From contig CM035355.1 in assembly GCA_020137815.1 (NCBI GenBank), positions 4,960,001 through 5,024,000 of the forward strand: a stretch of 64,000 nt of DNA. The letters are read 5' to 3'. A program made the translations under genes and the position numbers. Below the pieces are notes generated by a model. It worked only from the letters and a program-made list of their open reading frames with translations. It ran no database searches and had not been told where the DNA came from. This DNA comes from Hormiphora californensis (lineage: Eukaryota; Animalia; Ctenophora). Positions 31,312 to 60,011 of this stretch are shown piece after piece (within the stretch, counting starts at the first letter, position 1; every line of letters starts with the position of its first letter).

Positions 31312-34300
31312 TCATGTCTTGATAGGTGCCCTTGATGGTGGGGGTCCCCTGTTAACTTCTGATAACATGTACTTTACAAATTCCTCATAGTTTATTACTC
31401 CGTCCTGAGAGAGAAAGGATAGTTGGGCATTGTTTGATCACTAAAATAACGATTCGGGGAAGGTTACCCTCTCTTTCCCTCCCTATTCCCCTCTTATCTT
31501 ATCTTTGTCTCGCTCTGAGACAGAGACAGCATGGCCAAACATTTGGAACAAATGCTGCCTGTAAACCGATAGGTACCTTACCTAAAGATATAAATAATCG
31601 ATCCTCAATTAAATTGAGACAAATTGAGTCAATTTGTCTCAGTTTTGTACACTATTATAGTCAAACTCGCTCAATCACAGAGAGCAAAAATAATGCAATT
31701 GGTCATCCCAGAGCATCTAGATAAAACACTTGCTCACCTTATTGACGTCTATAAGATGAAAGAATTCATCGGCTTCGTCTTCTGTAAACTTCTCGCCGAA
31801 CCTAGAACATTTAGTTTGTTGAGAACAATTTAATGACGTATTTTATGCAGTTAAAAACAATCTGCACCAGATACTACACAGATATAACGTAATTGTTAGA
31901 GAAATATTTAGAGCTCTTATTATAAAGAATTCCTATAGAATCGATAGAGAATTTCTTGGCTCCTATGATCCTACCAATCTTTATATCTCCATCCCTTTTG
32001 TACAAGCCCTGCAACAATTTCAAATATTTCATCTCACCTGCAAAGAGCTTTTTTTAGCTCGTCGCACGTAACGTAGCCATCTCCACTTTTATCAAACACC
32101 TGAGAGAGAGAGAGAGAGAGAGAGAGAGAGAGAGAGAGAGAGAGAGAGAGAGAGAGAGAGAGAGAGAGAGAGAGAGAGAGAGAGAGAGAACGCTGTATTT
32201 TGTTCATTCATGCGGGGGACTAGCTGAGGCATTGTTCATTCACGAATCACGGGGGATAGTTTTTTGGTGAGGAGAATAAGAAATTAACCTGCAGAACATA
32301 GAGAGGTAAAGAAATTACGTAAGAGGGGCATCCGGAATGGAATCTCTAATTAATTGATTAAAACAACAGTCTCTCTCCCTCTCTTACTCTATTAGATTGA
32401 CCAAATGACAGCTATATTGCCAAGTATTGAGGTATATAGTATGTGAGTGGGCATGATGTCCCCCTGTAATTGCTAATACCGCGTGGCCCAAATTAAAGGG
32501 AGGGTACGTTGGCCTACTTTTCACCCAGAAGTTTAATTTCAATCACTCTGATATTTTGACACAATGTCTGCATGATTACTCATTCGAGGAATCCGAAGTT
32601 TCAGCCCTCTGGATGAAAGTTCATTTTTTTCAACCGAATGAACATTGAATGAACACCAATATGGGACCATATTTCGGTACCAAAGTTTCACAAATTTGTT
32701 TGGCTATCGATTTCCTTTCGAATGGGACCAGTTTGAGCTTAATTGGATCACCACAAGAATCACAGTGATCCGTTTTCTAAGCCTAGGGTAAGTCATGTGA
32801 TCCCCATCAAATTATGACGTGTTAGCAAGAGAGCTTACATTTTAACGGATGCTGTATCGGTACACCATCCTCATTAGCAGACGTGATACGTGATACTCGA
32901 CCGTTACACCTGCTTATTGGCACTTAGTAATGACGCTATCGTCTCATTAGGTGTCAGATGACCAAACATAGGGTTAGATAACTAAAAACTGTGTCTCTTG
33001 TGGTGGTCCAATTGAGCTCAAATTAGTCGCGTTTGAAAGGAAATCGATACCCGAAGGCGACTGTGAAATTCCGGTTCCAAAAAGCATTCCTGTTTTCAAG
33101 TTCATTCAGGATTCATTCCAGTCGGAAAAATGAATTTTAAGATAGAGAGCTTAAATTCCGGCTAACATCAAAATTGATCAAGTGCAGTGGCCGTACAGAT
33201 TTTTAGCGCCTGAATTTACCGATTTCTGGTCAAAACAGGTCAAAATCGATGTTTGGTAAAAAATATCATCCTTAAATAACTTATTTCACCCACTAAACTT
33301 GATTCAATTTTAATAAAAATGCAGATTGCCATTTGTTGATACTTGCTCTATTGTATGGCGGTTTTTAAAATAATGAAATCGAATTTAATTAAGAGAAAAC
33401 CTCAAAAAACCCGAAAAACGAAAAATTGAGTTCATTAATGAACTTTCAACTTTTATGATTTGAAACTTCGGATTCCTCGAATGAGTACCCATGCAGACAT
33501 TGTGTCAAAATATCAGAGTGATTGAAATTAAACTTCTGGGTGAAAAGAAGGTCAACGTACCCTCCCTTTAATTTGGGCCACCTTGAATGCAATGCCTCAA
33601 TAATCTATATCTCGTACCTTGAATGCCTCAATAATCTATATTTCATACCTTGAATGCCTCAATAATCTGGATCTCGTCCTCCTCCACCCAAACTGCCATC
33701 AATGCCAGGTACTCTTCAAACGACAGGTCCCCCGAGGAATCAGAGTCAAAACGCGATAAAACCTGTAATGAACGGGGGATTGAAATGACGGTAATTGTTG
33801 GAAAATATTAAGTGAACCTGGACCGAGACTATAAAGAGGGTAGCTCGTGAGGTCAGATAACAACGCTCCAAAATGGGTTCTTATCTGTCAGGCAAATGCT
33901 CTGACCACAGTTCTCCCGCGAAATGAGAATAGGGTCAGGCCAATGATCTGAGAGGTTCTTATATAAGTGTAGGTACTGTACCTTTACAATATCTGACTCT
34001 GTTGGAGAATACCCTAGTGCCATCAAGACAGGTCCCAGTTCATCTGTACCGATAGAATCGTTACCATCCCGATCAAACGCGTTGAAAACCTTCCTGAATT
34101 CCTTGACCTGGGGGCGTGAGAACTAAGAAATGAGCCACAGCGAGGGATAGAGTATTCAGCTGGTAAAACACAATTAATAGAACGGTGAACTTTTTATGAA
34201 TATATTCATGATTTCATAATGAAAACAAAGTCATGTCACTACCATCACTGTTACAGTGCTGCTTGTAGTGGGAATACAGTGTCTGAATAATACGGTATTT

Positions 34301-34727
34301 GACCATTACCAGGTTTCTTGGCGTGCTAAACGTAGGGCGCGAGAGTTTCGTATCATATGAAAGCATTGAATGCACGCACGATTAGCACTTTGCAGGACAC
34401 ACGTGTTCGCACACGTGGTGTTGTCAATCTGGCGCTCTGATTGGTCAAGAGCTTGCGTGTCGTCTTATCTTGTTTCACTGATACCGTATTGAACCGATAC
34501 CGTATTCTCACTACAAGCACCCATGATACAATACTCACCGAAAATAATTATTTATCTAATTGTTAGTTAAAAACACACGACAATGAAGCATTTAGGTTAT
34601 GTCCCAATTAATAATTAATGAGTCCCAATTAATACCTGGGTCGCACTGAACTCATAATTAGATCCATCCTCTTGACTCTCAATATCAACTACCTTGTCTT
34701 GATCGTCTGGTTTCAACTTGTTATACA
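31312..34727 (-). CDS. Calmodulin-like four-EF-hand protein, constant exons
   Basis: Exons 34727-34636 (phase-1 entry), 34107-33982 (DRDGNDSIGTDE), 33762-33649 (DSDSSGDLSFEE), 32099-32038 (DKSGDGYVTCDE), 31801-31738, 31404-31312 (DVNK|DGVINYEE ... TGA); all GT-AG and in frame. Confidence 0.93.
32497..33567. mobile_element. Non-autonomous DNA transposon with TTAA flanks and AGGG...CCCT ends (Kolobok-like)
   Basis: TTAA|AGGGAGGGTACGTTG ... CAACGTACCCTCCCT|TTAA; ~105-bp TIR plus a more diverged inner inverted repeat. Confidence 0.8.
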
Positions 34728-57952: not shown

Positions 57953-59088
57953 ACAAGCACACCAAGATCAAACTGCCTGCATCTCTGCAAACCCTGAAAT
58001 TGCAAATTTTAACCCAGCTCATCAAACAGCGATATAATTCACCTATAAGCGTGATACCGTCCCATCATGATAGAGAGAAATATATAAATTATATTTACAA
58101 CTGGATTGAGTATTGACTCAAGATTAGCATACACCTGGATAACTATGCGTGCCATATTACATGCGGCCCATACCATATTACATAGTGAACATCAATCAAT
58201 GTGTCTTGAGGAAAACACAAAATATTATGCGGGAAATATCATAAGTAACACATATAATAATGATGGCTGTATAGATTTCGGTAAAATCTATTAATCGCCG
58301 CCAAGCCCCCGACTCCCTGTATAACGTCATTGATAGTCTAAACGGGATATATTTGTGGGAATTATGGGGTTGCCTGGTAACAGCTACATATTCGATAGGA
58401 TCATGTCATTGCTTTTATCACTGAAAGCAAACTAACACCTTCCAGGTCAATGCTCTGGCCACAGTTCTCACGCTCTCCGAGAATAAGGTCAGGCCAATGC
58501 TCTGACAGACGAACACTTTCTATTTCATAACTCCTGATAAGTCCATTATAAACAAACTATCAGTACTGCACTACACACAACGACAATTTGAACAAACTCA
58601 CATCACAACTACAAAAATATAAAACTAGTATCACACGGTGCCTAGCTCTGTAGACACAGACTAGCTGTGGTGAAAGTCGTGCATGATTTCCAAGGGGTTT
58701 AAACACACACAATACACACTAGCCGTTATAGTATAGTTAGACGAGAGAGAGGGGGGGTTGCTGACTCATAAAAAGCATTGTTTTATGATTTTATTTTACG
58801 TGCACGTTGTATCTGTATGTATTGTAGTGATATACCTACGACGCACGTGTATATTTTACATGTGGCATGCACCTTGTACTACTATAGTTTATACTTTTCG
58901 GTATAAACAGCAAGGATATTGGTGCAGCTGTGTCGCCTCCAGACCCCTTTTTGATTTTCAGTGTACAGATCGGGTCTGTGCAGGTGTTGTGTTTCCTAAC
59001 GTACGTATTTTCGTTGTCAGAAACAAAAAAGTGGATATTGAGAGTGATGTTGTGAAAAAGATGATTACGAATAATCTATGACTCTTAC

Positions 59089-60011
59089 TTCTTGGTGATT
59101 TCTCCTTCCTCACATCGTTCCTCCACAGTTTGTTGACGCTAAGACCATCGTAATCAAACGCACTCTTTCGATTTCCCGCCATGTTCTCCTCTCCCTCATG
59201 CTGACTACAGTCGGAGTTACTGAAACAACAAACATGAGTTCAATATGGACTCATTGTGAGCAGATCACACCCTTGATTATTTCCTGAATTTTACAAGGAA
59301 TTCATGATCTGGCTTGGTTCTTAATTTTATTTCTGGTACGAATATGAAACCGTGTGCTCCCAAAGGATGATCGATTGATCTTTCCTCAATGTCTACTTCC
59401 TTTAAATATATTACAACCTATAATAGCCTAGTTGTATGCAAGGCTGCTATCTGTCTAGGATTCCCTTCTAAACTCTGTTTAACCCAATCACCCAACTATT
59501 TCTATCTAACTAACCATCTCTATTTAACCATTCCTATATGTCTGTAGCCTGTTTACAAATGATCCCATAATGGCTTGGATAATAATGACTTGCCATAAGC
59601 GGATCTCTCTCTCTCTCTCTCTCTCTCTCTCTCTCTCTAGTGACAGACGTCTGAAACCCAACGCAATTTATTATCGATAGACGATAACACACACTGAACT
59701 AAACTAGTACAAGCAAGTTTACTTCCACCTAAACTAAGGATCATGTCTAGAAAACTGGGGGTCAACTCATAGCCGTCATATCCGAATAACTCCCAGCCCC
59801 CATCTATCCCACTTATCTCTATTTCTCAGCCGGACCCATCTCTCTCTATCTATATTTCTCAGCTGACCCCAAATCTATATTATGTCTCTCTTTCCCCCAT
59901 TACCAGTATAACTCACCTCTTGTTCTTGATAGCCTGCTGAGCCCGAAGTGTGGCAAGCTCTCTCCGTTTGCGCATGGCAGCGGTCGTTGCAGCAACATTT
60001 ACTCGGGGCAT
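59089..60011 (-). CDS. Two-exon alternative N-terminus G (MPRVNVAATTAAMRKRRELATLRAQQAIKNKS|NSDCSQHEGEENMAGNRK...KSPR)
   Basis: Exons 60011-59917 (phase 2, AG|gtgagt) and 59219-59089 (ends phase 1, AGAA|gtaaga); acceptor actcag 13 nt before ATG. Confidence 0.72.

Follow-up and report, generated by a model that had tools for sequence, protein, structure and literature searches.

We consider it very probable that a 64,000-nucleotide stretch of the ctenophore Hormiphora californensis genome (GenBank assembly GCA_020137815.1, contig CM035355.1, positions 4,960,001 to 5,024,000) contains a single ctenophore calmodulin-like gene whose alternative first exons, each with its own ATG, form an upstream array spliced to one common acceptor at position 34727. 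This stretch is referred to as the window, and all coordinates are counted from its first nucleotide. Two of the alternative units, V1 and V2, are joined directly to the first constant exon in RNA, and comparison with orthologous proteins suggests that in H. californensis V3, V4, V6, and V7 likewise use the acceptor at 34727. The predicted product is one Ca2+-sensor body carrying mutually exclusive, basic N-terminal tails. The original prediction for this locus, made from the sequence alone, had proposed one body served by many N-terminal exons, and this core interpretation is supported by the V1 and V2 joints and by the orthologous proteins.

The constant body and its alternative first exons

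The calmodulin-like body is formed by six constant exons on the minus strand (34727-31312), whose translation comprises an acidic linker and four EF hands. All six are 100% identical to consecutive segments of a database protein of 251 amino acids, P0012, exons C1 to C6 corresponding to its residues 70-99, 100-141, 142-179, 180-200, 201-221, and 222-251, respectively:

34636..34727, minus strand: C1, linker YNKLKPDDQDKVVDIESQEDGSNYEFSATQ; 30/30 residues identical to P0012 residues 70-99; joints to 35455 and 37951, and from 34636 to 34107
33982..34107, minus strand: C2, EF hand 1; 42/42 identical to P0012; introns on both sides in spliced contigs
33648..33762, minus strand: C3, EF hand 2; 38/38 identical to P0012; joint 33762/33982 in runs X1 and X2
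32037..32101, minus strand: C4, EF hand 3; 21/21 identical to P0012
31737..31801, minus strand: C5; 21/21 identical to P0012
31312..31404, minus strand: C6, EF hand 4, tail NRGPPPSRAPIKT and stop codon; 30/30 identical to P0012

C1 has a good polypyrimidine tract and AG at its acceptor and contains no ATG. Since it begins with TG, the last two bases of a split codon, it needs a partner that ends in phase 1; and because the constant exon always supplies this TG, the junction codon is NTG and the junction residue is always leucine, valine, or methionine. Both the six constant exons with their four EF hands and the dependence of 34727-34636 on a phase-1 partner had been predicted, and both are borne out, the former by translation and by the complete match to P0012, the latter by reading of the sequence.

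Pfam searches with P0012 returned EF-hand_7 (E value 6e-31), EF-hand_1, and EF-hand_6, with four EF-hand motifs arranged in two pairs, and residues 96-237 align to the whole of calmodulin in PDB entries (E values 1e-35 to 1e-42; calmodulin residues 6-149). The four loops, DRDGNDSIGTDE, DSDSSGDLSFEE, DKSGDGYVTCDE, and DVNKDGVINYEE, carry acidic or other oxygen ligands at positions 1, 3, 5, and 12, and loop 1 has an aspartate at position 6, where glycine is usual. Judged by these features, the body is a putative calmodulin-like Ca2+ sensor. Calmodulin proper, a near-invariant protein of ~149 residues without an extension, was considered and rejected, as the protein with V2 has 251 residues; it departs from calmodulin in its N-terminal tail and linker exon, in a C-terminal NRGPPPS... 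tail, and at many positions of the alignment. In an AlphaFold2 model of P0012 computed from a six-row alignment, the mean predicted local distance difference test score was 42 and the tail had no confident structure. An intron-less paralogue of the body is present elsewhere in the genome (G000:C12:6113357-6113854, plus strand) within an open frame of 262 amino acids and is 56% identical to the body of the Bolinopsis orthologue; more than one isoform is likewise known for lobate counterparts of this paralogue, several being listed for such proteins as the Bolinopsis 'calmodulin-like isoform X4'.

At least six alternative first coding units lie upstream of C1 on the same strand, spread over 25 kb between 35455 and 60011. 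They are listed below together with a probable dead member of the array; unit numbers in brackets are those of the original prediction.

35455..35590, minus strand: V1, MPLSRAALVSVKAH..., 45 codons plus 1 nucleotide, donor T|GTAAGT; RNA joint (absent from the original prediction)
37951..38155, minus strand: V2, MPFLTLRRFRFRRK...DPLTFNVLNLV..., 68 codons plus 1 nucleotide; RNA joint, P0012, orthologues (unit 1)
44452..44623, minus strand: V3, MRGAIHVYIKP..., 57 codons plus 1 nucleotide, donor GTAAGT; Mnemiopsis P0003 (unit 2)
45600..45762, minus strand: V4, MSVNLFYRARRP..., 54 codons plus 1 nucleotide; Bolinopsis X8 (unit 3)
47356..47503, minus strand: probable dead exon, ATG to phase-1 GT, 148 nucleotides, TAG at codon 30; Bolinopsis X10 match
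54138..54510, minus strand: V6, MAENAGSDLPSPR...CPFDLVKKSPMPKNRNIWSQTKEY, 124 codons plus 1 nucleotide, donor G|GTAAGT; P0030, P0019 (unit 4)
59917..60011, minus strand: V7 first exon, MPRVNVAATTAAMRKRRELATLRAQQAIKNK, phase-2 donor; P0005, P0008 (unit 5a)
59089..59219, minus strand: V7 second exon (V7b), ...SAFDYDGLSVNKLWRNDVRKEKSPR, acceptor tttcag, phase-1 donor GTAAGA; frame and short motif (unit 5b)

The five ATG-initiated units of the original prediction all exist as open reading frames (ORFs), to which V1 is added here. Four of the five end directly at a phase-1 GT, as had been stated, while the fifth consists of two exons with a phase-2 and then a phase-1 donor, whose lengths of 95 and 131 nucleotides together give phase 1. 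All six units therefore end in the phase that fits the common acceptor at 34727. An in-frame stop codon just upstream of the ATG had been noted for three units; it is present in all six, 9-24 nucleotides before the ATG (15 nucleotides in V1).

The tails are 45 to 124 residues long and mostly unrelated to one another in sequence, so that the variable exons are not clear paralogues. All are basic, with isoelectric points of 10.2 to 12.0, in agreement with the prediction, and adjoin an acidic body. The RRxS- and SP-type sites that the prediction attributed to the tails ([RK][RK]x[ST] and [ST]P) are present in four of them. V6 is present as a single copy in the genome. The V2 type contains two conserved blocks, MPFL.L.R.R.[RK] and D.L..[NS]V.NL. 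A short motif resembling the second block is common to the V2 type, the V7 type, and L004, a transcript of a more distant relative (DPLTFNVLNL / DGLSVNKL / DPFSFNVNGL / DDGLSFNIATL), and its recurrence may reflect a short binding motif common to these tails, as well as a partly common origin.

RNA joints and orthologous N-termini

RNA mapping covered one 6-kb stretch of the window, 33600-39599, using Logan contigs from three marine metatranscriptomes of two studies. Spliced contigs confirmed the introns 34108-34635 (between C1 and C2) and 33763-33981 (between C2 and C3), both with GT..AG ends. The acceptor at 34727 was joined to the V2 donor at 37951 in runs X1 and X2, which belong to two different studies, and to the V1 donor at 35455 in run X2, in a contig that covers 35455-35607; in both cases the skipped part has GT..AG ends. 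Junction reads had been proposed as a check of the array, and two different donors were found joined to one acceptor. Of the ten differences listed between the contigs and the window within V1 and V2, nine are synonymous and fall on third codon positions (P = 3.6e-4), namely four of four in the V1 contig and five of six in the V2 contig of run X1, a bias that is expected of coding sequence under selection.

To identify relatives of the gene, 1.84 billion representative proteins were searched with the 30-residue linker exon alone and then with the body of a returned protein. The linker exon retrieved three relatives in which it is preceded by different N-termini, two of them full-length proteins carrying the whole body. 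The body retrieved six isoforms of Bolinopsis microptera LOC134817069 (X1, X4, X6, X7, X8, and X10) with different N-termini, two products of Mnemiopsis leidyi ACHWQZ_G014036, P0012, and several proteins from Logan, JGI, and ENA transcripts of relatives. The isoform numbers of the Bolinopsis locus, assigned by automatic NCBI annotation, reach X10. Between P0012 and Mnemiopsis the body is 86% identical; the linker exon is 73-77% identical. Five N-terminal types, MPFLTL, MPRVNV, MRGAIH, MS.NLFYR, and the X10 type, are common to the H. californensis and lobate loci.

The N-termini of the orthologues were then compared with the window by tblastn, with 300 shuffles of each query as a control. The best window match of each orthologue N-terminus falls on a predicted unit and either starts at its ATG or ends at its donor. 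For V2, the N-termini of P0012, P0009, P0011, P0015, and P0016 have their best match at 38155 (E values 1e-41 to 5e-6; 0/300 shuffles). P0012 is composed of V2 and the constant body, with 66 of the 68 V2 residues identical, and the orthologues of this unit comprise P0009 (Bolinopsis X4), P0011, P0015, P0016, and L003. V3 is aligned over the whole exon from its ATG (44623-44453) by the N-terminus of Mnemiopsis P0003, which is fused to an orthologous body (E value 1.5e-6; 0/300 shuffles). Bolinopsis X8 (P0002, MSRNLFYRPRRP...) has its best match exactly at the ATG of V4 (45762-45715; 11/16 identical residues; E value 0.003; 4/300 shuffles), and a search of the protein database with V4 itself found no fragment.

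V6 is matched at 54210-54139 by P0019 (E value 0.012; 0/300 shuffles), which carries the V6-homologous end (CPFDYV...TIWEQGKQF) fused to a calmodulin-like body. A protein search with V6 gave one match, P0030, an ORF on a 912-nucleotide ENA contig of genomic DNA from a relative. Between the ATG and the Gly-Lys across the G|GTAAG donor, V6 and P0030 share 73% identity and 87% similarity, but they are unrelated on both sides of this span, as would be expected if it were a coding exon with the proposed borders. For V7, Mnemiopsis P0005 and Bolinopsis X7 (P0008), both starting with MPRVNVTASALRNQRR..., have their best match at 60011-59916 (E values 0.02-0.03), and the observed score was reached by 16/300 shuffles of P0005 and 8/300 shuffles of P0008. 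In V7b, DGLSVNKL resembles DDGLSFNIATL and DPFSFNVNGL, which occupy the same place in L004, P0005, and P0008. The weak matches of V4 and V7 carry weight because they lie exactly on predicted start codons, while the predicted exons make up less than 1% of the six-frame space. In line with the homologue check proposed for the N-termini, other ctenophores carry the V2, V3, V4, V6, and V7 types in front of the orthologous body, and by this comparison each of the five mapped units has putative homologues among the genuine first exons of the orthologue.

The Bolinopsis X10 N-terminus (P0007) matches 47485-47405 (E value 7e-4; 0/300 shuffles). Here an ATG at 47503 opens a frame that runs to a phase-1 GT at 47355 and contains an in-frame TAG at codon 30. 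The unit 47503-47356 is probably either dead or a variant carried by the assembled haplotype. The N-termini of Bolinopsis X1 (MTAEF...) and X6 (MFHANL...) had no match anywhere in the H. californensis genome, and those of P0001 (MSMINNF...), P0013, and L004 had no convincing match in the window.

A scan of JGI metagenome data yielded two transcripts, L003 and L004, both from more distant relatives; their 5' ends as read contain no recognisable spliced leader. In L004 (L004:55-231), a JGI metatranscriptome contig of another ctenophore, a further N-terminus (MFAAARPKFSSIKKLF...DDGLSFNIATL...) is carried on an orthologous body.

Alternative explanations and the choice of the first exon

Several points weigh against the array as proposed. 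Each RNA joint is represented by one short contig per run, with 24-30 nucleotides on its shorter side, and the V1 contig is ~95% identical to the window and may come from a close relative. The joints cover V1 and V2, and the use of V3, V4, V6, and V7 in H. californensis is deduced from orthologues. The homologies of V4 and V7 are short (16-28 residues, E values 0.003-0.03) and derive their weight from position; V7b, placed by its frame and a short motif, is the weakest part of the gene model. V1 has no known orthologue and is known so far from H. californensis. The comparison with lobate ctenophores is confined to N-terminal types. Finally, a sulfotransferase gene lies on the same strand between V6 and V4, and splicing over this long range across it is assumed.

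One rival explanation is that V1 and V2 are the sole units used in H. californensis, the distal units being conserved leftovers or being used in other ctenophores. Direct joints are indeed limited to 35455 and 37951, no protein fragment was found for V4 in the database, and the stop codon within 47503-47356 indicates that exon loss occurs in the array. However, each of V3, V4, V6, and V7 has retained its start codon, a frame without stops, an in-frame stop before the ATG, and a phase-1 donor, which reads GTAAGT in V3 and V6, and the confinement of V6 conservation to the span from ATG to donor points to purifying selection. The stretch used for RNA mapping moreover ended at 39599, so that the distal units lay outside it. 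We regard a restriction to the two proximal units as improbable.

A second possibility is that V6 and V7 are 5' exons of the sulfotransferase gene and not of the calmodulin-like gene. The feature concerned is as follows:

52561..53478, minus strand: carbohydrate sulfotransferase, Sulfotransfer_2 ORF between V6 and V4; Pfam E value 2.5e-18

The original prediction had stated that no other minus-strand exons could receive the upstream units, which overlooked this gene, and its ORF does follow directly downstream of V6 on the same strand. However, the sulfotransferase has a probable ATG of its own at ~53676, in a probable signal-anchor exon with a hydrophobic stretch (~53676-53560), and contains a very short intron. 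A phase-1 donor joined to the acceptor cag|TG at ~53668 would create a TGA stop codon, and the AG sites before the main ORF are in phase 0. In addition, a homologous N-terminal end precedes the calmodulin-like body in P0019 for the V6 type and in P0005 and P0008 for the V7 type. An assignment of V6 to the sulfotransferase was accordingly rejected on splice phase and on P0019, and for the two units together we judge this explanation very improbable. The sulfotransferase is taken as a probable nested gene within the long intron of the distal isoforms; the H. californensis genome paper reports hundreds of nested genes (PMC8527503).

That the units are chance ORFs ending at a phase-1 GT has next to no probability and is already refuted for V1, V2, V3, and V6: although the window holds 194 ATG ORFs of at least 40 codons on both strands, phase-1 GT sites are frequent, and ORFs followed by a phase-1 donor (at least 5/6 match to GTAAGT) are mildly enriched on the minus strand (6 in the 25 kb, compared with 3 on the plus strand of this region), a chance origin is contradicted by the RNA joints, the synonymous-site bias, the orthologue N-termini at exact ATGs and donors, and the restriction of V6 conservation to the exon. 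Since the enrichment is mild, the ORF and donor pattern is not proof by itself; the proof lies in the joints and the orthologues.

For the proposed array of alternative first exons, the most plausible course of events is that each transcript contains one unit. The transcript would start at this unit, or be trans-spliced just upstream of it, and the donor of the unit would then pair with 34727. The unit would thus be chosen at the 5' end of the transcript, either by a promoter of its own or by addition of a spliced leader at an acceptor just before the ATG. Strong acceptor-like sites precede the ATG by 6 nucleotides in V6 and by 13 nucleotides in V7. Spliced-leader trans-splicing is common in the H. 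californensis genome (PMC8527503), and the 3' 29 bases of the published spliced leader of this species are present in 626 copies in the genome and in none in a reversed control. Given how common trans-splicing is here, the locus lends itself to asking how a first coding exon is selected where trans-splicing creates the 5' ends. By analogy with KChIP and CaBP1, the tails would probably set the location, partners, or regulation of each isoform, and exon-specific probes offer ready markers of which cell types use which tail.

A bolder reading, which we put forward as speculation and regard as rather unlikely, is that the array represents an ancient N-terminal 'tool kit' of ctenophores, in which at least five exon types were present before pleurobrachiid cydippids and lobates diverged, and in which the isoform is chosen by the acceptor that receives the leader on a long common pre-mRNA and not by separate promoters.

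Neighbouring features and comparison with known systems

A deep spot of 110 nucleotides in the intron between V2 and V1 was considered as a small RNA and rejected, its inverted repeats and high copy number identifying a miniature inverted-repeat transposable element (MITE):

35979..36087, no strand assigned: MITE of ~110 nucleotides with 23-nucleotide terminal inverted repeats, within the intron between V2 and V1 and not part of the gene

Candidate copies of this element number at least 965 in the genome, and the 39 other copies that were scored are 94-98% identical. It occurs in marine metatranscriptome contigs at a depth of thousands and with many different flanks. An Rfam search of 30-64 kb found no family. 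The introns are very rich in long (GA)n/(TC)n microsatellites (for example 31028-31122, 32102-32189, 40962-41100, and 49811-49914), and one of them directly adjoins the C4 acceptor. Plus-strand ORFs at 8523-9089, 10446-11261, and 28620-29549, with HMG box, WD40 repeat, and Alg9-like mannosyltransferase (Glyco_transf_22) domains, belong to ordinary flanking genes.

The closest counterparts of the gene are the lobate orthologues, Bolinopsis LOC134817069 and Mnemiopsis ACHWQZ_G014036, which have a common constant body and homologous N-terminal types. They differ in that no counterpart of the lobate types X1, X6, and P0001 was found in H. californensis, and V1 has so far been found in H. californensis alone. 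We found no paper describing the Bolinopsis or Mnemiopsis loci, which exist as automatic annotation. What stands out is the number of units on one gene and their retention in both the pleurobrachiid and the lobate lineage. Ctenophores branched off very early among animals and have a neural and muscle chemistry of their own. The retention, across distant ctenophores, of one predicted Ca2+ sensor with at least six exchangeable tails suggests that a diversification of the 'one core, many N-termini' kind took place separately from that in vertebrates.

The original prediction had considered such an extensive array without precedent for a calmodulin-like gene. This was too strong, as KChIP (PMC3973911) and CaBP1/caldendrin (PMC4110014) are already EF-hand sensors with alternative N-terminal exons, and the Bolinopsis isoforms had already been annotated. 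Vertebrate KChIP genes combine a constant core of four EF hands with many start sites and alternative 5' coding exons, giving 17 N-terminal variants over four genes; these N-termini determine where the proteins reside and how they function, and their usage differs among cell populations (PMC3973911). KCNIP1-4 thus resemble the ctenophore gene in having constant 3' EF-hand exons and variable N-termini from alternative 5' exons. In contrast, the KChIPs belong to the neuronal-calcium-sensor family and the ctenophore protein is calmodulin-like; their variants are distributed over four genes, whereas at least six units are found on the one ctenophore gene; and their N-termini carry myristoylation, palmitoylation, or transmembrane motifs, none of which was seen in the basic ctenophore tails. 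CaBP1 and caldendrin are calmodulin-like sensors that obtain different N-termini from one gene (PMC4110014), but this is a vertebrate neuronal gene with three isoforms. As each of the 60 PDB matches listed for P0012 bears the name calmodulin and none that of KChIP or CaBP1, the ctenophore gene would fall outside these families, and the resemblance appears to be one of gene design and not of descent.

With regard to layout, the locus had been likened to those of clustered protocadherins and UGT1A. In those systems, tandem first exons, each with its own start and a proven promoter, are spliced to one shared constant exon. The likeness holds in that a tandem row of ATG-carrying first exons is spliced to a single constant acceptor in the ctenophore gene as well. 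It does not extend to the variable exons themselves, which in protocadherins and UGT1A are large paralogues encoding the main functional domain, whereas the ctenophore exons encode short, mostly unrelated tails. Furthermore, the promoters are proven there, whereas those of the ctenophore units are putative, in a genome in which spliced-leader trans-splicing is common (PMC8527503). If the choice of a leader acceptor indeed determined the isoform, this would be a mode of first-exon selection unlike that of protocadherins, UGT1A, or KChIP.

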